Source: Mytilus trossulus (Eukaryota). Taken from it: a DNA stretch of 64,000 nt. A program made the position numbers and the translations under genes. A model generated the notes under the pieces. The model saw only the letters and a list, made by a program, of their open reading frames with translations. It was not told the origin of the DNA and did no database searches. Shown here piece by piece: positions 18,455-31,700 of this stretch. The stretch is from positions 23,273,216 to 23,337,215 of the forward strand of contig NC_086385.1 in the NCBI RefSeq assembly GCF_036588685.1. Direction: 5' to 3'. Every line of letters begins with the position of its first letter. Position 1 is the stretch's first letter.

Positions 18455-18525
18455 TTATTTGTGCAAGCAACACTCAACATGTTAGTATAAAATCATTGTT
18501 CTCCTACGCACATGATTCATTTACG
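18455..18525 (+). promoter_or_regulatory. Candidate core promoter of the Cys-rich peptide gene
   Basis: TATAAAA at 18486, Inr-like TCATTT at 18517 about 30 nt downstream, C/EBP-like TTGTGCAA at 18459; ATG at 18545. Such motifs are common by chance in AT-rich DNA. Confidence 0.3.
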
Positions 18526-18544
18526 TGGTGTATGGAATTTCGGC

Positions 18545-18593
18545 ATGAAGTTTACAATTTTAACATTCCTTATTATTATCATGGTTTCAAAAG
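18545..18593 (+). CDS. Cys-rich secreted peptide, exon 1 (signal peptide MKFTILTFLIIIMVSK)
   Basis: Basic-then-hydrophobic signal peptide; phase-1 donor AAG|gtagga matches the phase-1 acceptor at 27512. The link across the 8.9-kb intron is inferred. Confidence 0.6.
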
Positions 18594-19019
18594 GTAGGAC
18601 TTTTTTTTTTAATTTTTGTTTACTACTTTTCTCGATGAATTCTTGATGCTACGTAAATAACATTTATATGTTTAAACAGAGTAAAATCAGAAAGATATAT
18701 AAAAAAGAAGATGTGGTATGATTGCCAAAGAGACAACTGTCAACAAGAGACCAAAATGCCACAGACAGTAACAAGTAAATATGCCTATATTGATATAAAA
18801 AGATGTGATATAAGTGCCAATCAGACAACTCTTTATCCAAGTTCCCATTTTAAAAATAGATTATTATAGGTAAAACGTATGGCCTTCAACACGGAGCCTT
18901 GGCTCACTTCGAATATGAAGCTGTAAAGGGCCCAAAATAAATGATTAGTGAAAACCAACGGTTATTTTATATAAATACACGGCAATGTTTTTTTTTACTT
19001 TTATTTTTACTTACACATT

Positions 19020-19385
19020 CAATGATGTACTTAGATGATCTTAAGTAACATTAAATAAATCAAGAATTTAAAATTGATACTGTATTAGCTGAGGATCAAA
19101 ATACGCTAAAAAATCGATACCTGAATAGAGCTCCTTTTTGAGATATTTGATATATATCATGTATAAGATATGGCGAAAAAAATCTGATTTTTACCTTATA
19201 TTTGGGCCTCAAATGAAAAGAACAAAATCCAGAATATGCTCCAATTTAATTAAAATGACCTTTTATGAGCTATTTTGTCTTCTATTAAAAAGATAAACAT
19301 TTTTTTTACAAATGTCGTACCTAAGAACACAAAGGAGTCCGAACATCAGACACAAATTTCAAAACATTACCTAAGTACATCCTTA
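19020..19385. mobile_element. Degenerate Kolobok-like MITE
   Basis: Inverted ends aatgatgtacttagat... and ...acctaagtacatcctta. Confidence 0.45.
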
Positions 19386-19387
19386 TC

Positions 19388-19476
19388 TATCCTGGTTCCG
19401 AGACTACGTTCCAGGTATTAGCTATTAGCCATACTCTCTCACGACATACTTAATATTGCGATAGGGAACCAGTCTA
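19388..19476. mobile_element. 89-bp MITE with 9-bp target-site duplication
   Basis: TIRs tatcctggttcc / ggaaccagtcta; direct repeat ATCCTTATC at 19379-19387 and 19477-19485. Confidence 0.7.
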
Positions 19477-22400
19477 ATCCTTATCTCTCCCTCTTTACGA
19501 TTCTCTGCAGCTGTAAAGTCGATATGTTTACAACGATAATACCTATATGGGTAACATAAATAGAAATATGATTATCGATACAATAAAATATGTTAAAAAA
19601 AATCATTCACACAAATCCTCTTCGCCTAATTTCCTCGACATTATCAGTTTTTATTTACTTATACACTTTTAAAGATTCTTTTTGGTATTTGAATATATTC
19701 AATGCAGCTGTTGAGTTTTAAATAACTATTCCGCCAGACATTTGATGTGATTACCACAAAAAGATGTATAACTATAGCTACAAACTAAAACAAATGTTTT
19801 AAGAGAATCATTGATAAAAATCCTACTCTTCCTTTTAAAAGAAAACATGTTGCATTCTTTAAGGTTGTAAAATCGGTTAACTTAATATGAAGGAGACCAC
19901 AACTACTCAAAGTAATTTAAGTTCTCGCATTAAACATTTCTTCAACAGATTTGATAATAGTTCCTGTTTTATGGACAAAGTAAAACAAACAACTAATAAC
20001 TGGAAGGTAATAACGTTCAATAGGTTTCAAAAACAAACAACAACAATTGATTTAAGGAAGCTGGCTTGTCATGTTTTAGATTTTTTTTTCTGGTTTTATC
20101 TCTTTGAATGCCTTGAAAATTATACCCGGTGACCCCTATATTTCTTTTTGTATTTTTTTTAACTGCTAGTACTGTGTTGTTATTTATGTAATATGAGGAA
20201 GGCGCTACCTTAAATGCCAGCTTTATAATGTCCTATACATTGATTAGTTGTTGTTGTTTAACATTCAGTGGCAAATATTTCATGCATGTTCAGAACGAAT
20301 GACCAAGGCTACATTTACGTATTGTTTATGTCTAAAATAAAATAAAAAAAGTTCAGATGGAAAATGCTAATTTCCTCAAAAAAATATTCTGTTTCCCAAA
20401 TTAATGAATAAAAAAGCATAGGACAAAAAATATTTTGAATCCAGATCTTTACCAAAAATGATTTTATCTTTCAGATATGCAAAATAAATTTAACTTTTAT
20501 ATATCTAAAAACATAAAAACTTCCCAAACCGCACATGTCAGTCTGTACACAGTATTATTTTAGGTGATAATAAGGCTGTATTTGCCAATTTGTTATGATA
20601 AACCTTATAAATACTAGTGTTAAATTTTGACTAAATAATTTTAAATGATAGCGCTGAAGGGCTTCGGTTAAAAAAAATCTGACTCGAATAAAAAAAACCA
20701 TTTGTATTTCTGATCATCTTCAGTTTGTGAGTTCTACATCAATATCATGTACTATTAAATTCAGAGTCTGTTTTATGTCATTTCTTGCATATATTTTTTT
20801 TGTTATATGTACATAATGTAGCTTACTTTTCAAGTTCTTATATGACAGCAAAATAAAATTGAGAATGAAAATGGGAAATAAAAGCATGTAAAAAATTTGC
20901 TTTCGAGTAATGCTTAATCATGTCATAGTTGTTTTCAAGAAGACACATTTGGTTTCAGACAATAACTTGAGTTAAGTAAATTGATGTCCATGTATTTTAC
21001 TAGGAGGTTCAATACACAAAAGGAAGATAAGAATTGATTTAAGGGTTATAGTACAACATTATTGGGGGTATTTTTTTTTTTTAATTTTGGGTTTTTCTTC
21101 CAAAAATTACTTTATTTACATTGCCATCTAGTAAATATATAGATGCAGCAAATACAGATTTGGCAGGAGATGCACTCAAAATAGGGTGTTTTAAATATTT
21201 ATCTGTAGTCTGTGCATTTTTCCTATGATGTACATGAACTTCTTGACAATGTTGATGTGAGTATCATGATAAAGAAAATATATTTGGTAACCGTAAGTAT
21301 ATATTCACAATTGACATGCACCAGAGCGAGAAAAGGATCTTCTTTCCCTTTAATTTCAAAAATTGCACATGATTATTTTCTCACAGATACACATGAGTTA
21401 TTTGGTTAATAAAACATTTGTCAATGTTTGAAACTTTCAGTAATAAAAATTTAGTTTAGCTTGTTTGAATGTTTCACTGATTGTGTGAAAATTTTAACAG
21501 CAATGTACAAAACACTTGAAAAAATTGCATTATCTGCAGAATTATTGATAACTTTCCTCACAATAAATTCACAAGGACATAGAACTAACATATTGTCCAT
21601 GCTATTCTGATCTAAGTTTTATACATACATATACTGGCATAGCTGTTTCAAGTTGTCTTCCTTTTTTTTGATTTCTTGAGAAGTATTTGTTTAACCTGTT
21701 CAGTCACTATAAAGTGTTACAATTCTTATTTAGACGCAACACATTGATAGTGACCAGAAAGGTACTGCTTTCACATGAGAGAAGCTAGAAAATATTAAAT
21801 GTACATTTTCAATATTTTTGTAGGACTTACTATCATATGAAATTAAGGAGATATGTAGTTAGAGACTTCTTCTGAATAGAAATATGTGGGTCTACCTGCT
21901 ACCTGTTTTCAAATTAGTCCATATTGAAGTTGAAAGGATCCAAAATTAAAATATGTTTGATTTCAACTGACATAAAAAAAATTGTGTTATATTTATATTC
22001 TCAATATACATCTGCGGTCGTATCAGGCTGTGCATGGCAAAGCATTTTATTGCCTTTAGGTGTGTACTTTTCGTTTGTTTTGGTCATGAAAATAAATTTG
22101 TAGTTCTGTTGTGAAGTTGCTAACATGAGAACACCCAGATTAAACCTTTATTGTGAGTTTTTTTCACCAGCTTTTTTTATGAACCAGACAAAAGTTTATT
22201 CTGTGCTTATTTTTTTAGACTATACTTGTTTACAATTTAGTTACACGGTCACCAATATAATTTTGAGTTCATCCAGAGTCATAGAAAAATGGGTTTCAAC
22301 TGACCTCCAAACAATCCATGATTCTGTAATGAGGTCAGTACCCAAATACCATACATCATTACATGTTATTTCAAATCCTTAAAAATGAAATTAAACAGAT

Positions 22401-23864
22401 GTTTTGTTTTATTATTTCAAATATTTCAATAAATTTGACATTATTCCATGCTTAAACTTTTATGTTTTGAAGAAAAGGATGCTGGAAACAAATTTAACTT
22501 ACTCATTTTAAAAAGATGATAATTAGATAACTTCACATGGTGAAAGAAAATTTGAAGGATTTCCACAGCTTTTTTTTGTTGAATAGGTGCAATTTTAGTT
22601 ACTGAGACAGAGTGCAGTTTTGGTACTGTAATGTTATATAACCATAAGTGTGTATTGCAAAATAGGTTCAAATGTGAACCTGATAGTGATATAGTGATAC
22701 AGTTCTTGGTAGAGTGAAAATGTTTTTTGATCAGGTTTAAACTGATGCATAAAATATACAGGTGACTGTTGCAGCTTGAATTTTTAAGGATTTAGCCCAA
22801 AAACATGATAATCTCCCAAGTAATGTATGCCCTGTACATGTATATACCTATCAAAGTCATGGTATTATCATGGGTTATCATATTATATAATTAACTCCCA
22901 TCTTCCCATAAATCCAATTTTGGACAATATGGGAGCATACAATATATAGTTTGTACTTAAATGTTCTACTCAAACTCAAGTCTCCATTTATGATTGATCT
23001 TAGAGAGAGAAAACAAAACAGTTTGCCAAAGGGAGTCATGAAAATAAATTTGTAGCTGTGAAGTTGCTAACATGAGAGTACCCAAATTGCACAACTTTTT
23101 TTAAAAACCAGACGAATTGTGAATTAGGGGGGGGGGGGGGTAATCATCAGTTTTGAATTAGTCTGTGGGTTTCATGACTTACCGTGATCACATTCAACAG
23201 TATAACCAACGTCATTATCACTCTTCTTTGATATGGGGAATTAAGTGGCAGGTGAACATAAGTAGTCACGGTCAACCACAACCAGTGCACCGGAGTTTAT
23301 CCCGCATGCCGCAAGGCCATATTAAAATAAAATCCGAAATGTATTGCTTACAGAGTTTTTTACTGTGTTCCCATGACTGGACGGAACTTTTACACTAAAT
23401 ATGTTATCGTTTACTATAATTTTGTGACCTTTAAATGCAGTACCTGTGATTATTTAGGTAATTTGTTTTGACCTCACTGATAATGGAATGTTGTAGCAGA
23501 CGAAACATGGCGTCAGATGTTGTTGTCCTAACTTCGTTAATTTCCGTGGTACGATAAAATTTAAATAAACTACACAAGTTACCAAAATTTCTGAATTCTT
23601 GTTTTTGCAAACAAATAAAAATTCATGACGTATTTATCATCGAAATTATTCCGATCTGTCCCATTTTTTCAAGATCGCGTTGAAACGTTAAATTTGGCCG
23701 CCATTAAACAAAAATAATCGTTTGAGATTTTACGAGAGTGACGAAACTTTTCAGATGGGACATGTAGAGAGAGTTATCGTTCTTTATTCCAAAACGATGC
23801 TTCTACCATAAGTGCCAGCTAAAGCTGGCATATAATTTTGTTTATTTTCTTTGGTTACGTCTTC

Positions 23865-24262
23865 TGGTGTCGGACTCGTACTTCTCTTGGGCTGAATTTG
23901 ATGTGTGCGTATTGTTATGCAATTGCTTTTCTACATTTAATAGAGGTATTGGGGGAGGGTTGAGAACTCATAAACGTGTTTAACCCCGCCGCATTTTGTG
24001 CCTGTTCCAAGTCAGGAGCCTCTGGCCTTTGGTAGTCTTGTATTATTTTGATTTTAGTTTCTTGTGTGCAATTTGGAAATTAGTTTGGCGTTCATAACAC
24101 TGAACTAGTAAATATTTGTTTATGGGCCAGCTGAAGGCCGCCTCCGGGTGCGGGAATTTTTTGCTACATTGAAGACCTGTTTGTGACCGTCTGCTGGTGT
24201 TTTTCTTTGGTCGGGTTGTTGTCTCTAAGACACATTCCCTATTTCCATTTTCCATTTTATTT
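23865..24262 (+). repeat. ~400-bp interspersed retro-derived repeat (family B)
   Basis: Near-full copies at 39020-39418 (+), 51310-51700 (+) and 28705-29110 (-). 3' fragments at 5462-5605, 8218-8312, 26302-26345, 38200-38460 and 63545-63615. All share the end gacacattccccatttccattctcaatttt. Confidence 0.85.
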
Positions 24263-24559
24263 CTTTATAGAGTTTGTCCTTAGTGCCGTGTGGAGACAGT
24301 AGAGTGCCCCCCCCCCCCCCCGTGCTTCATGTTTATGCTCTTATAATATACTAGATTATGGAGTGTGTTTCCGAGCGAGAACTTCTCTAGTTCATTACTT
24401 CAGGAATATTTATCAAATTGTCGTATTTTAATACATTGTAGTATTCAGCCCCATTCTACTATATAGTCAGCTGTCAGTCGCTACCCTAATATACCCTGTC
24501 TTTTGTTAGGAAATTAATGCTAAAAGCTTTTGACATTTATAGCCGAATGATTTAACATT

Positions 24560-26345
24560 TTTACATAACTTAATTTATTGTATGCTGGTTCATATTCTGG
24601 ACGCCAGATTTTGCTCCTTTTTAATATAATTCACATACCCAAAACAAACATGAAGCTTAGAAATAGAAAAGCATTAAATACTAAACTCCTTCAAAGGGTA
24701 TCTTCACTCCTCAATCGTATCCTCAACCGATTATCTAAAAATACTACCATCGCTAACATTTTTAACAATAAAAATCGTGGTTACCCGTCTATCGATAAGT
24801 GTTATGCCAAAAAATGACTGACATGTCCACGACTTTCCTCTAACCATACGGTCAGGTCGACGTTTAATGGTCGCACATTTTCTTTAAATTTTGAAATTGA
24901 TATACTTGAAAAACAAACAGTATTGTTTATTCATTCATATGAAACAAACAGGGATGCGGTATTCAGAACGTAGGTGAAACTGAACGATATGTATGTAAAC
25001 GCACTCAAGAACATTTTAAAGACCCAATAAATTCAAAAATATCATTTATCAACACCTTAAGAAGCACAATCATCCTATTAAATATTTAGCAGTTCAACTT
25101 TAAGAAGTAGTAAATAAGTGAACATGGAGAATATCATTCAAAGTTTGTACGATCACGGAAAATAATTGAATTTAATTGGATTAGAAAGTTACAGACATTC
25201 TACCGTCTCGGTCTTAATGATTATATCATGGGAATTGGTAATATATCAAGAACCGATTCCGTTAACATTTTTGATATATTTTCTTAACCTATTCGTAATA
25301 TTTCGGACTTAATTTCTATTTCAAAAAACAACGACAGACATTATCTGTTAACAAAGCTCTGTTTATTACCGGTTACTGAGTTAAATTTTGGAGGATTGCA
25401 ATATAAAAAAGGAGATGTGGTATTATTGCCAATGAGACAACTTAATAGAAAAGACCAAAATGACACGAACTTTAACAACTATAGTTCACCGTACGACCTT
25501 CAACAATGAGCAAAGCCCATACCGCTAGTCAGCCATAAAAGGCCCCGATAAGACAATGTAAAACAATTCAAACGAGAAAACTAACGGCCTTATTTGTTTA
25601 TGTAAAAAAATGAACGAAAATCAAATATGTAACACATAAACAAACGACAACCACTGAATTACAGGCTCCTGACTTGGGACAGGCAGATACACAAATAATG
25701 TGGCGGGGTTAAAAATGGTAGCGGGATCCCAACCCTCTCCATAACCTGGGATAGTGGTATACCAGTACAACATAAGAACGAACTATAAAAATCAGTTGAA
25801 AAAGACAATTTCATATAGCAGTCATAAGTATGAAATAATTCAAATTATTATAGCATATTGTTATTCTTAACCATTTCTCAAAATTGATCGCCCTGAAGAT
25901 CATCAAAATAATTTATTAAATACAGTATGTCAATAAAGGTTTTGATTTTGTAAATATTGCCGGTATATTTAACGACCATTCTTTTAAAGAACAAATTCCT
26001 GGATATTTTGATAATACCCTATTATTCCCTATTATTTGTTATATTTACAAGAAATCTACCCGGAAATTTGTGTTTAGTTATAACGAATTGTGTAAAGATG
26101 TTAATATTAGAGAAAAATACACCCATTTCGTATAATTATAGTAATTCCAAATACATTTATGAATCCATTTTCCATGTTATAACAGGAGATCTTAACATCG
26201 TTTAAGATCGAGAGTTAAAATTATTCGTCAGTAGAGGACCTTTATATCGTCCCCCGTCAATTAATAATGTAATGAGTGTCGTAATATTATCCACGACTCA
26301 CTCTCTTTGACACATTTCCCATTTCCATTTTTAATTTTATTTTCC
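24560..26345 (+). mobile_element. Decayed Naiad-type Penelope-like element, copy 1: Zn-knuckle, N-terminal GIY-YIG endonuclease and linker, with TGA at Cys positions
   Basis: DKCYAKK*LTCP; T*KTNSIVYSFI*NKQGCGIQNVGET; RKIIEFNWIRKLQTFYRLGLND; HVITGDLNIV...SRGPLYRPP. Interrupted by another repeat at ~25400-25805. Confidence 0.8.
25400..25805 (-). repeat. Interspersed retro-derived repeat (family D tail) nested in Naiad copy 1
   Basis: aaaaag(a/g)agatgtggtatgattgccaatgagacaact...caacaatgagcaaagcccataccgc. Related copies at ~3840, 7330, 10715, 18700, 41350, 45520, 50090, 52920, 61250 and 63230. Confidence 0.8.
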
Positions 26346-26810
26346 ATTAATTTACCATAGTCATGTGTAAAATGAAATTGAAAAAACGGTAACAATGTTA
26401 AAACTTATCTGAAAGATTCCAAATTACCAGTGTGTTGTTTTTATATCTAAAGCATTGATTTGAGATAAAAACTTTTTTTTTCTTTTTCAAAAAACACTTT
26501 TTTCTTACCAAAATTATGGAAAAAATAATATGTCAACCCACAAGTAATAATTCGAACATAACTTGATAAGAATATTGAATATCTTAAAACAAATTTGAAA
26601 ATTCATTAAGTACTTAAAAAATCGAACTTTCGTCAAAATTAGTTTCTGCCCTATGATCGTTTACACGTAATTTTTATACTTTCCGACATGTTTTAATGTT
26701 CATTATCATTTGTGCATACATTGCAAATGATAGCTCTTTAAAATAGTATAACTCATTTTGTTTTACATTTAGTATTTTATTCCAAAATCTTGTATCGTTT
26801 CTTTTGTTAA

Positions 26811-27481
26811 AGGGGCAATAGCTGTCAAATTCATGGTAACCGATTTGACTCAAATTCTCATATTTGATTTATAACAATGTAAAACATTTATCCAAACTGC
26901 CAAAAGTCTAAAATAAACAGTATACAGAGCATGGTATAGATAATATGTAGGTTCGTTTCGTGTGTATGTTAGTCCAGACGCCATCTAATTAACTATTGAT
27001 TTGACCTCAGATGACCATATAAGCGATGTAAACATAAATAAAGATATGAATAGATTAAACCAACACGTGCAATAGGATTTTCATAGGTCTGTTTGATTTT
27101 ATCTTATGTGTCTCATTGTTTTTTTACTGTATACGAATGATTTTATATAGATCGAATCAGTAATCAAATGATTTACCGAAGTTTCACTTTCATTGTTGAC
27201 ATTCGTTTTCTTTAAATAACCTGTACACGTATAAAGCATGCGTTGTCAATCTCTAGCAAGGGGTTAAATTGAAGTTCACATGAATACGGACTTATTGAGG
27301 TTGGCTAATTCAATTGCAAGCGAAACAGTAATTATCAAGGTTTCATCGCTTAATTTGACAGAATTAAACCATTTTGGCTGCTAAAAGCGAATTATTTTTT
27401 CACTATAATTTCACTTTTATTATTGATTGAACAAAAGTAATCTTACTTAAGATTTTTATATATCTCTTAGCAAATGCCCCT
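26811..27481. mobile_element. Kolobok-like non-autonomous DNA transposon
   Basis: TTAA at 26807-26810 and 27482-27485; TIRs AGGGGCAATAGCT / AGCAAATGCCCCT. Confidence 0.75.
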
Positions 27482-27512
27482 TTAAAGAGTTCATTTTGAT
27501 TTTATTTTTTAG

Positions 27513-27626
27513 AAGGACATGGCACAAGATGTTCTGCAATGAATGGAAAGTGTAAAAGATCATGTTTATCAACAGAAATAGCTCTGACTGGACATGGGTG
27601 CTGTCATCATAAAAAATGTTGTAAAG
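27513..27626 (+). CDS. Cys-rich secreted peptide, exon 2: beta-defensin/big-defensin-like domain (EGHGTRCSAMNGKCKRSCLSTEIALTGHGCCHHKKCCK)
   Basis: T-rich acceptor (NAGNAG tagaag), donor AAG|gttagt, phase 1-1; C-x6-C-x3-C-x11-CC-x4-CC with GxC and C-x3-E. Confidence 0.85.
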
Positions 27627-28050
27627 GTTAGTATTATTAAATGTAAATGAATTATTTTTTTTGTAAAAAAAAACCGGAAATGTTCATTTATTCAAAACAA
27701 ACTTTTGTTGGATTATTAGTTGCTTGAATATGTTTAGCTTGAATGACTGTTTTTTTGATATTATAAGTTTAACATGGTTTAAAATATATAAAAATAAACA
27801 GTTTTCGGATTGTGTGAGTATTAAGCGTTTTTTTCTGAACTCCAAAGGGTTGTTCAACCTATATTTTAAAATACAAGAATATTACAAAATATAAATATCA
27901 ACTTAGCAGATAAAAAACTCAACGGAACGAGAAAAAAATCAACTATGTTTATTTCGGATTATTTCGAAAACATGTCGAGCATGTCTTGTAAAATGTCACC
28001 TACCTTTTATATGTATAAAAAAAGTTACTGAATATTTTTCTTTTTCACAG

Positions 28051-28199
28051 AACCTATAGCTACATGTAGGCCATCATGCCGCGATATTTGTGGGACGAAT
28101 GGATGTGGATGTATACATTGTGATTGTGAGTGTCATGGCAATTGTCTTGCGACCAATATTACTACTTGTTGTGAAGACTTCGTGACAGAGTGTACCTGA
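28051..28199 (+). CDS. Cys-rich secreted peptide, terminal exon: somatomedin-B-like domain (EPIATCRPSCRDICGTNGCGCIHCDCECHGNCLATNITTCCEDFVTECT*)
   Basis: tttttcacag| acceptor in phase 1; SMB signature SC-x3-CG...C-x-C-x3-C-x7-CC-x-D-F-x3-C; TGA at 28197; AATAAA at 28271. Confidence 0.85.
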
Positions 28200-28704
28200 T
28201 TTTTAAAGCATTTGCAATATGTATTGTTTATCATGTTTATTTGAGTAACTGTTACCAAATTAAAAAAAGAAATAAAAATAGACATGAAAAAATGTAGGAA
28301 TATATCTCCTTTTCTAAAGCTCTATTTTTATATCAATGTTTTGGTTCTGTTTCGTTTATATGTATTTCATTGGAGTTTTAAATAATCTTTTAGATTAGAG
28401 ATTGTACATTTTACATTGTTTAGTTGATATTTAGAGTAATGATAGAAAGATATTTGAATAATATATAGACTTTTATTTTTTTCAAAGATCTTCTCGACGT
28501 GTATATTTTATCTGAATATATCAGAAGTTATGAGAAAGGAATAGATGACAGTGGGTTAATTAGAGCAAAAAAATCAGACAACATCACCATGCTTAAACAA
28601 TTGACAAAAGGACAACGAACAAAACAAATAAGCACACGAAAATATTGTGTAACCCAAACGCCAACTCCAACCTTGCATTGAATTCTGTTTGATTTCGTTT
28701 CAAG

Positions 28705-31700
28705 ATGAAATTGAGAATGGAAATGGGGAATGTGTCAAAGACACAACAACCCTACCACAGAACAGACAACAACAGAAAGCCACCAATAGGTCTTCAATGC
28801 AGCAAAAAATTCCAGCACCCGGAGCGTCATTCAGCTGGCCTCTAAACAAATGTTAATACTAGTTAAGTGATAATAGACGTCAAACTAAACTCCAAATTAA
28901 ACACAAGAAACTCAAAGTAAAAAAAAGAAGGACAAGACTAACAACGGTCACACGCTCCTGACTTTGGACAAGTTCAAAAATGCGATTGGGTTAATTATTG
29001 TCAAAGGTACCAGGATTATAATTTAGTATGTTAAAAATGTTAATGAGTTCTCAACGCTCCCCCTTTACCTCTATCCAATGTTGAAAATTAAACGCAAAAC
29101 AGTACGCACATCAAATAAACAAAATGACAATTATACATAAATAACTGTGTGCGGTAACAGGGGGACAAGGCAACCTCACCATCTAGAAATAGATAATTAA
29201 CGATAGGAAATGAAAACTCATCTCTTTTATCATACCTTTTTTGTATTAAGCTGTCTGTTAAAGATATAGATATCAAAATCGAGGAAAGAGCAGTGGTCAT
29301 TGTGAGTAATTGCTTTTTTAAAATAAGTTCAACAGGATACATTTCTTTAGTATACATGTTCCGGACCATATGGGTATTTGAACCATACGCGTATGGTCAT
29401 GACCATATGCGTATGTTCATATGGTCCGACCGTACGCGTATGGTCAGACCATATGAGTATATACTCGTTTGGTTATAAACGGGCTGGACCATATGAGTAT
29501 TTGGACCATATAGGTATATTTTTCAATAATATGCATGAAAAAACTTTATGAAATAGCAATGATTGCTACATGCAATTGTATTGTTTACAATTCAAATAAC
29601 ATTAAATATTGATGACAAAGTTAGTTTTCGTCGCTAAATTGTTCTCTTGCATGGATGCGTAGGGTGACATTTACGTCCACACGGTACCATAGTTTTCTTT
29701 GGTCCTGGGTCATTCCGATGTGTCTACGGTGAAAAAGCTTTAGATCTCCAATATCGTAACATGACTGAAGTACATTATATCATTAGACAACTTTAAAAAA
29801 TAAACTAGTGTCCTTGCCTTTGAAGTCATTCGTATTTTTTTTTAAAACAAAACACGTATAAGTATAAACAATTATGAATATTGCACTGCTAATGCTTATC
29901 ATATTAAGTTTCATAAGTAAGCAATGTATTAGACTTTTCCGTCAGGTTATAGTAAAACAGTTGACTTCTTGTGTAACGTTTTATTAAAATATTTTTGGAA
30001 GTTATTTTCCCAGGTCGACATTTTGCCGTGCATTCACTCGTAATAACATATCGGTAATGAAAGAAAATGTGGTTAATATAGTTTTACTAGTGATGAAATT
30101 TAGTGTGTGACACTGCTTATTTTATTTTGCTAATCTTGTTATTCCTGATTTTTAATAATAAAAATGACCTTTGGTAGTGTCTTCTTAATGACGTGACAAC
30201 TAGACGGGTTATATAAAGAGGTAAGCATGAATGTACCTGTTAATTACCCCGACCATACGCGTACGGTCCGACCATACGCGTATGGTCGGACCATATGAGT
30301 ACATACCCATATGGTCATGACCATACGCGTATGGTCCAAATACTCATATGGTCCGGAACATACACACTGAAGTCATCATTATTGAGAGCCAATATATGAT
30401 CCAAATGTCTAAATGTATTTATTAATTTTTGGTATCTGATGTTGTTTCGAATGGTCTTTGCTGATTTTAGTCATACATTACAACTCATAGCAATACAGGA
30501 ACAGGTCCTTAATAAGTGGTGCACAGTTAGTTCTCATTGGAGTTACGATGACCTGACAATTTACGGTATCTACAAAGTGAACAAAAATGTTATTTAGTAA
30601 AATTCAAGGGCATTAAGTATGTCCAATTGAAAAAGTTCTTTTGTTTATTGCTACTAAAAAATTACCTGAAAGAGTTTGAATATATGTTATTACATTCTGA
30701 CTTGTTAAATGCCCATTTAATTAGGTGTGTTAATTTTTCTTAATAAGAATGTGAGACAATGTGGTATACTGGGTAGAAAAATCTAAACTTTGAACAGATT
30801 CAAAATCATAATCAAAATATAAGCATGTAATTTATCAAGTACTTCCAACGAGTTTTTGACACTCTAAACGTAACTCATTCAACTATTTTCAAATGTCTTA
30901 TTTGAACAATTTATTATCAGGTTTTTTATTGTTCCAACTGTACTGGTAAGAGGAATAGACGATTTAGTAGTGGAACAATGGCTTGAAGACGAAATAAGTC
31001 TATATCTATAGTTGTAAGGTGTTTTATGTAGCTTAAGAAGCCAGTACATAGACGGGACTTTCAATGTATTTGGTTCTACTTGTAAAGAGGTAGCTAAAAC
31101 TTTTATGTTTGTTACAGATGTCGTTTTCTGAAAATGGAGTCAGTTGGAATGTTGGTGAATTGGTGATTACTTTTTTCATAACCTCAATGTAACATTTACG
31201 TCTAACAATAATGATATCATTGTCAGGTTTATCGGCTGGGACAAAAACAAATTCCTTGGCTAGTTCTTTAAGTTTATGCTTGATGCGAGAAATAAGTTTG
31301 TTATGGCTGTTTTTAAGAGTAAAATGTTCTTAAAAATGTTGAATACGTATATCAAATATGTGCATTACTGAATTAAAAAAAAAATCAAAGATTTTTTGTC
31401 AGCTTTTCCCCGTTTTATCAATTTCAAACAGTACGTACGGAGTGAGCCGTGGATGATATTAAGACACTCATTCCAATTAATGATTGAAGGGGGCGATATG
31501 TAGGTTTATTACTGATACTATCATTAAGACTGAGAGGGTAGACTGTCTGTAAATGTTTAATCCAATTTAATTCAATTAGTTTTCGTGATCTTACAAACTT
31601 TGAATGCGATTTACCAGGCTGCTTATTTATCACTTCTAAAGGTTGAACTGTTAAATATTTGATAGGATGATTGTGCTCTTTATGGTGTTGATAAATGATA

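Follow-up and report, generated by a model that had tools for sequence, protein, structure and literature searches.

A predicted three-exon gene in Mytilus trossulus

We describe a predicted gene in a 64,000-nucleotide stretch of the genome of the mussel Mytilus trossulus (contig NC_086385.1, positions 23,273,216 to 23,337,215), referred to here as the window, whose secreted product would join a β-defensin–like module to a cysteine-rich domain probably derived from the somatomedin-B (SMB) domain. The gene lies on the plus strand, and coordinates are window positions unless a contig is named. Exon 1 (18545-18593) holds the ATG and the signal peptide in 16 codons plus one base and ends in phase 1 at the donor AG/GTAGGA. 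Exon 2 (27513-27626) is a symmetric phase 1-1 exon with the donor G/GTTAGT and encodes the cationic seven-cysteine module. Exon 3 (28051-28199) is preceded by CACAG and encodes an anionic 12-cysteine domain that carries an N-I-T sequon and is followed by a TGA stop. Intron 1 (18594-27512) spans 8.9 kb and contains interspersed repeats, while intron 2 (27627-28050) is a 424-bp GT..AG intron in phase 1. A tandem acceptor, TAG/AAG (27510-27516), lies downstream of a T-rich tract and places the start of exon 2 at either 27513 or 27516. The polyadenylation signal AATAAA is found at 28271-28276, and an ATTAAA is also present at 28259.

This exon layout had been proposed in the initial annotation of the window and was upheld: the translations are exact, the splice sites match the consensus, both junctions read as GT/AG borders in phase 1, AATAAA follows the stop, and a Mytilus galloprovincialis homologue has identical junctions. 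The three-exon frame is free of stops and frameshifts, and its TGA is placed past the last cysteine. The leader in exon 1 comprises 16 residues with a hydrophobic core of 11-12 residues, and among candidate leader exons between 8000 and 27512 it offers the best phase-1 donor coupled with a strongly hydrophobic core. Exons 2 and 3 take the top two places for cysteine density among the window's open frames of at least 25 codons; about 400 bp of the same strand separate them. No second copy of any of the three exons, no open reading frame of at least 180 amino acids (intron 1 included) and no C-type lectin exon was found in the window. The genome was searched as 541 contigs totalling 1.3 Gb, in which the window belongs to contig C13; the window exons were searched singly, and the deposited M. 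galloprovincialis protein VDI09862.1 stood in for the full-length protein. This search gave no further copy of exon 3.

The start codon can be placed at two positions. An upstream in-frame ATG at 18512, followed by an open frame through 18512-18544, corresponds to the start annotated for the M. galloprovincialis protein. A TATAAAA that may serve as a TATA box reads at 18486-18492, 53 bp 5′ of the proposed ATG, and would set the start of transcription near 18512-18517, a placement that favours 18545 over 18512 as the predicted start codon; in a genome of 70% A+T, the motif could also be a chance occurrence. We consider the locus an intact, single-copy predicted gene, probably functional, for a secreted, disulfide-held two-domain protein of about 85-87 residues. 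On the sequence evidence, this account of the gene and its domains is very probably correct.

A deposited homologue in Mytilus galloprovincialis

In order to find relatives, a profile built from exon 2 and a paralogous exon on contig C2 was searched against 1.84 billion representative proteins, giving four matches. P0003, a repeat protein from this search, was a spurious match and was discarded. VDI09863.1 (115 amino acids), one of the four, and its cluster mate VDI09862.1 (116 amino acids), both deposited from M. galloprovincialis under the name "hypothetical predicted protein", consist of a leader, a seven-cysteine module and a 12-cysteine domain, with junctions at the residues given by the window model. 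On the M. trossulus genome, VDI09862.1 maps best to the window gene, precisely at its three exons, with identities of 67%, 76% and 67%. Exon 1 matches the N-terminus of VDI09862.1 at 64% over 28 residues and is the sole match to its leader in the genome, 9 kb 5′ of exon 2 on the same strand.

At a divergence of about 30%, the window protein and VDI09862.1 still share every one of their 19 cysteines as well as the N-x-T sequon. The two deposited proteins differ from each other by one glutamate at the exon 1/exon 2 junction, which is the difference that alternative use of the tandem acceptor at 27513/27516 would yield. The window gene resembles this pair in leader, both domains, junctions, sequon and isoform difference, whereas identity per exon is only 67-76% and the window stop falls two codons before that of VDI09862.1, making the protein two residues shorter at its C-terminus. 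A relative of the window gene is already deposited, as an uncharacterised "hypothetical protein".

Neither VDI09862.1 nor VDI09863.1 matched any Pfam domain at E<=1 over the whole protein, the SMB model included. A collection of 5.8 billion proteins contained no identical or near-identical protein, the sole relative being the M. galloprovincialis pair, and exon 3 alone gave no match in a length-limited index of that collection. All close relatives found are Mytilus proteins. They are named only "hypothetical", "unnamed" or "perlucin-like", and none bears the name of a known mussel antimicrobial peptide family (MGD defensins, mytilins, myticins, mytimycins, mytimacins, CRP-I, myticalins).

Exon 2 encodes a β-defensin–like module

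The cysteines of exon 2 form the array C-x6-C-x3-C-x11-(C)C-x4-CC with an N-G-K-C motif, which gives the spacing of trans-defensins (C-x6-C-x3/4-C-x9-13-C-x4-7-CC) and their glycine before the second cysteine. The initial annotation had described a six-cysteine pattern, and its spacing stands; the count does not, as exon 2 has seven cysteines (C-x6-C-x3-C-x11-CC-x4-CC), the additional one adjoining the fourth position of the six-cysteine array. The acceptor of exon 2 is in phase 1 and lies five to six codons 5′ of the first cysteine, as in trans-defensin genes. A phase-1 intron just 5′ of the cysteine-rich region is a hallmark common to big defensins and β-defensins (PMC7203481). The module shares the pattern C-x6-C-x3-C-x11-C-x4-CC, the glycine before the second cysteine and the glutamate after the third with big defensins, non-canonical big defensins, panusins and vertebrate β-defensins, and with trans-defensins as a whole (big defensins, panusins and β-defensins) it also has in common the cationic charge (isoelectric point, pI, 9.2) and the position of the intron. 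Unlike trans-defensins, it contains an extra cysteine, occupies an internal symmetric (1-1) exon rather than a terminal one, is followed by a second folded domain and scores below the Pfam cut-offs.

Exon 2 scored 18.5 bits (E 0.0028) on the Pfam model Defensin_beta_2, under the gathering cut-off of 22.2 bits. Among six related exons, Defensin_beta_2 matched all six below or near its cut-off and Defensin_beta matched three (best E 9.9e-6); Defensin_big also matched three, at E 0.0092 or worse, and did not match exon 2 of the window. A genome scan with Defensin_beta_2 led to further phase-1 exons on contigs C13 and C12 with the array C-x6-C-x3-C-x9-CC-x5-CC. This group aligned with the window-type group in hhalign at a probability of 82% (E 1.1e-5), and a hidden Markov model (HMM) of the C13 and C12 exons scored exon 2 at 23.0 bits, a value reached by none of 5000 shuffles.

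A profile of the six exons was compared with all PDB sequences and gave 10 matches, every one of them of the β-defensin fold. The top matches were helianthamide (E 5.6e-4), which is the solved structure closest in sequence to the module, and a human β-defensin analogue (E 6.4e-4), followed by DEFB106, crocodile CpoBD13, platypus DLP-1, hBD-3, hBD-4 and oyster big defensins 1 and 5; the two-sequence profile of exon 2 had no match among PDB sequences. The Atlas ESMFold model of residues 28-66 of VDI09862.1, made without an alignment, was closest to a cluster named "beta-defensin-like 1", with a template modelling (TM) score of 0.77, and unrelated small sheets were listed as well. In the β-defensin fold, a three-stranded sheet is held by C1-C5, C2-C4 and C3-C6 disulfides, an arrangement that the module may share. 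On the basis of the cysteine array, the phase-1 intron, a Pfam score just under the cut-off and a profile that matches only structures of the β-defensin fold, the β-defensin–like call of the initial annotation is retained. That annotation had also set the protein apart from big defensins, and membership is indeed excluded: exon 1 encodes the 16-residue leader only, and the prodomain and hydrophobic N-terminal domain of big defensins are absent. A scan of the whole genome with Pfam Defensin_big gave nothing at E<=1.

A paralogue with the same exon order on contig C2

The one close relative of exon 2 in the genome lies at C2:91119347-91119454 and is 68-71% identical. The DNA of the two exons is 76.5% identical over 132 nt and the similarity ends at the exon borders; the C2 exon is likewise in phase 1-1. 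The ratio of nonsynonymous to synonymous substitution rates (dN/dS) between the two was 0.23, with dS 0.88, indicating purifying selection. About 6.5 kb 3′ of the C2 module exon lies a terminal exon with a phase-1 acceptor and the same E-P-I start as exon 3 of the window, and this exon scores 29.8 bits on Pfam Somatomedin_B, above the cut-off of 23.1. The arrangement of a defensin-like exon followed by an SMB exon is therefore conserved on two chromosomes.

The exon 1 region of the window had no nucleotide similarity to the 10 kb upstream of the C2 paralogue, and no similar leader was found there. A possible candidate leader for the paralogue lies at L004:9158. In another assembly, a 3889-bp Logan/ENA contig (P0001) contains the C2-type module exon as a genomic open reading frame of 95 amino acids in which one internal cysteine is changed to tryptophan and the final CC is lost; this may be a decayed copy in that sample.

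Exon 3 is a probable SMB derivative with additional cysteines

SMB domains follow the pattern C-x3-C-x9/10-C-x-C-x3-C-x5-CC-x6-C, with a CC-x-D-[YF] tail. In a MAFFT alignment, all eight SMB cysteines have counterparts in exon 3, at residues 9, 13, 25, 27, 31, 39, 40 and 47, as do D42 and F43. The spacers of exon 3 are x11 and x7 where SMB has x9/10 and x5, with insertions of five and two residues, and the additional cysteines are at residues 5, 18, 20 and 23. The best matches to PDB sequences, follistatin-related protein 1 (E 0.31) and the SMB domain of SUSD2 (E 1.2), were not significant; the SUSD2 match covers the C-x-C-x3-C ... CC-E-D-F-x3-C part of exon 3. Comparison with the SMB exon of the C2 paralogue by BLASTP gave E 6e-4, and hhalign against five SMB exons of the genome gave E 1.2e-4 at a probability of 55%. 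Sequence alone would lend modest support to an SMB identity.

Structure prediction with AlphaFold2 (AF2) and a Foldseek search, proposed as a check when the gene was first annotated, pointed to SMB domains only, with weak scores: all 43 matches of the exon 3 model at E<=10 were SMB domains, with a best TM score of 0.62 and no E value below 0.45. When the model of full-length VDI09862.1 was compared with 48,161 chains in VIA-align, the top five were SMB domains (Z 3.4-4.1), and unrelated rows reached at most Z 2.6. In the alignment-free Atlas ESMFold model, 10 of 10 rows contained SMB proteins, with TM scores of 0.56-0.64. The structural scores are each weak because the domain is tiny.

Several results weigh against this two-domain reading. 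Exon 3 does not match any Pfam model even at E 10, and so stays short of the 23.1-bit gathering cut-off for SMB; an HMM of the five SMB exons scored it at only -2.4 bits, a value reached by 26 of 5000 composition-matched shuffles (it beats 99.5%); and a profile restricted to the 12-cysteine type found no SMB domain in the PDB. Confidence of the AF2 models was low, with a mean predicted local distance difference test (pLDDT) score of 67.4 for exon 3 and of 54.6 for full-length VDI09862.1, in which the C-terminal part reached 62-71 and the defensin-like module stayed below 50. The alignments given to AF2 included canonical SMB exons, which may have biased the models. The absent Pfam match, the shuffled sequences that score as well, the type-specific profile and the individually weak structural scores would all be accommodated if exon 3 were an unrelated cysteine knot resembling SMB by chance or convergence. 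However, the paralogue has a bona fide SMB exon in the same slot, with the same intron phase and the E-P-I start, alignment places all eight SMB cysteines and the CC-x-D-[YF]-x3-C tail in register, and three structure comparisons, one of them alignment-free, return SMB and essentially nothing else. An unrelated knot is accordingly improbable, and from the fold evidence and the positional homology it is very likely that exon 3 descends from an SMB domain. The description of this domain as an SMB with added cysteines, which came with the initial annotation, agrees with the aligned cysteines, the SMB exon at the equal position in the paralogue and the three structure comparisons.

Exon 3 resembles the SMB domains of vitronectin, ENPP1-3, ENDOU and SUSD2 in the eight-cysteine knot, the CC-x-D-[YF]-x3-C tail and the best-matching predicted fold. 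Unlike those domains, it has four extra cysteines, the insertions of five and two residues, a loop with a sequon and no Pfam match, and it forms the C-terminal domain of a tiny protein instead of an N-terminal domain in a large one. The domain is acidic (pI 4.6). Its N-I-T sequon, a likely glycosylation site, sits in a lengthened loop aligned with the segment of the vitronectin SMB domain whose residues bind PAI-1 and uPAR, and a vitronectin-like mode of binding is therefore unlikely.

Canonical SMB exons are also found elsewhere in the genome. Two tandemly duplicated eight-cysteine SMB exons lie 70-100 kb to the left of the window on the minus strand (C13:23173631-23173732 and 23204848-23204952), with no defensin-like exon within 10 kb upstream of them. 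In addition, C11:55036888-55038023 contains SMB-type exons or repeats of the canonical kind, five or more of them in tandem.

The module is joined to different partners in Mytilus

The defensin-like module also occurs in proteins with other domain organizations. M. coruscus CAC5419524.1 and M. californianus XP_052082186.1, the latter named "perlucin-like", have a signal peptide similar to that of the window gene and an N-terminal module 72-77% identical to it. They differ from the window gene in the partner, which is a long-form C-type lectin domain (Lectin_C, 68 bits) and not SMB. The lectin part of these proteins has no close copy in the M. trossulus genome, where the best match is 42-47% identical. 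In M. edulis, a protein (P0007) carries three modules in tandem behind its signal peptide; tandem-module genes of this kind are built from copies more distantly related to the window module. Exons matching P0007 number at least 55 in the M. trossulus genome, nearly all of them on C13 between 1.4 and 28.4 Mb. Examples of this large expansion lie on C13 at 3.42-3.61, 5.2-5.28, 13.4-13.47 and 28.43 Mb, and a further one at C8:79.36-79.41 Mb (loci L034-L039). These exons encode a 7(+1)-cysteine β-defensin–like module; many of the matches have stops at their edges, and the count possibly includes pseudogenes. The one copy examined closely (L034/L035) has both acceptor and donor in phase 1.

The partners of the module are thus a 12-cysteine SMB, a near-canonical nine-cysteine SMB, a lectin domain or more modules, and the cysteine counts of module plus partner are 7+12 in the window gene and VDI09862.1, 7+9 in the C2 paralogue and 7+6 in the lectin fusion. 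Judging from these sequences, the gene is one of a small family, restricted to Mytilus, whose members combine one defensin exon with differing 3′ partners; the module has the appearance of a building block that is shuffled among immune-type proteins. The idea of exon shuffling had been raised for the window gene in the initial annotation and is supported by the other Mytilus species in which this module and a similar signal peptide precede a C-type lectin.

β-Defensins are thought to have derived from big defensins, and one proposed route is the shuffling of a cysteine-rich exon to new leader regions (PMC7203481). A review of big defensins describes domain-loss variants in clams and zebra mussels and no such chimeras (PMC7203481), and full-text literature searches yielded no description of a defensin-like plus SMB or lectin architecture in mussels, nor of the accessions discussed here. 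The architecture and the 12-cysteine SMB variant are new, while the kinds of component domain are known. We tentatively suggest that Mytilus may offer a living example of the proposed route, with an undescribed class of chimeric immune proteins that combine a defensin with a recognition domain and have undergone a large expansion on one chromosome. An internal, phase-matched, cysteine-rich exon with three different partners within one genus makes the shuffling idea testable by comparison of Mytilus genomes.

Possible function and alternative explanations

We propose that the protein could act as a secreted humoral or mucosal factor for defence and recognition. In this view, microbial surfaces would be the target of the cationic defensin module. 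The acidic knot at the C-terminus would either provide a binding or adaptor function or offset the charge of the module to which it is tethered. Such charge neutralisation is the presumed role of the anionic extensions at the C-termini of the mussel defensin, mytilin and myticin precursors. A role in defence is favoured because the module is a member of the defensin fold family, is cationic and diverges fast between strictly kept cysteines, and because it belongs to an expanded gene family and elsewhere has a carbohydrate-recognition domain attached. With seven cysteines from exon 2 and 12 from exon 3, the mature protein has an odd total of 19, which suggests a free thiol or an intermolecular disulfide, possibly in a dimer. 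The module always contributes an odd cysteine, and in the C2 paralogue the two extra cysteines could pair as a bridge between the domains. Taken by itself, the function in defence or recognition is a tentative assignment, whereas the explanation as a whole, comprising gene, domains and role, is the best available and somewhat favoured.

The main rival to a role in defence is that the protein is a secreted enzyme inhibitor, in which the module would plug a digestive or microbial hydrolase and the SMB knot would provide a second binding surface. Helianthamide plugs α-amylase and the two β-defensin-fold domains of the tick carboxypeptidase inhibitor act likewise; SMB domains are protein-binding modules. 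The top PDB match of the family profile is thus an enzyme inhibitor and not an antimicrobial peptide, which speaks against the defence role, and helianthamide is also the best match of the profile of the 12-cysteine type (E 0.04). In addition, the nearest Atlas feature cluster has members with Inhibitor_I68, the family of the tick carboxypeptidase inhibitor, although this is a lead only. However, these matches reflect a common fold, with true β-defensins scoring nearly as well as helianthamide on the family profile, and the fusion to a lectin and the tandem arrays of the module fit recognition and defence better. Neither helianthamide nor the tick inhibitor has an SMB partner, unlike the window protein. 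An inhibitor appears unlikely, though it deserves more weight than the remaining explanations.

Two further explanations are less likely than either defence or inhibition. The protein could be a component of the extracellular matrix, shell or byssus, with structural or cross-linking knots and an odd cysteine for intermolecular links; the "perlucin-like" name of the lectin-fused relative, taken from a nacre protein, the odd parity of the 19 cysteines in the window protein and the occurrence of SMB in matrix proteins such as vitronectin would agree with this. Nevertheless, "perlucin-like" is a label assigned automatically to numerous C-type lectins of molluscs, the window protein lacks repeats as well as the Gly/Tyr/DOPA-type or acidic low-complexity stretches that shell and byssus proteins typically show, and no paper found in the literature searches links these accessions to shell or byssus proteomes. 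A matrix role has a slim chance. Slightly less probable still is the view that the locus has fallen silent or is decaying, being the unexpressed remnant of a family whose members vary in presence and absence. Consistent with such a relic, the M. galloprovincialis pair, at 67-76% identity, is the closest match in the collection of 5.8 billion proteins, repeats fill the long intron 1, and the C2-type exon of another assembly (P0001) shows Cys-to-Trp changes. The window gene itself, however, has no stops or frameshifts, its stop lies past the last cysteine, and its splice signals, 19 of 19 cysteines and sequon are kept at about 30% divergence.

Disease resistance and variation in the presence or absence of genes are known traits of mussels. 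If the proposed role in defence and recognition is correct, the mussel defence repertoire gains a secreted family that is uncharacterised and diverges fast while conserving its cysteines. Both the SMB derivative with 12 cysteines and the odd cysteine total are new as structural variants.

Repeats around the gene

Inverted repeat copies, 81-88% complementary, flank the block of exons 2 and 3 at 23904-24200 and 28766-29110, and so do copies at 26304-26343 and 28702-28741. The flanking interspersed repeat is also present in intron 2 of the C2 paralogue (L005:3860-3972); any role of these repeats in exon movement is pure speculation. Finally, direct and inverted repeats of about 45-70 nt occur at 29345-29476 and 30255-30372, about 800-900 bp apart and 1.1-2.2 kb 3′ of the gene, and resemble the ends of a small transposable element.

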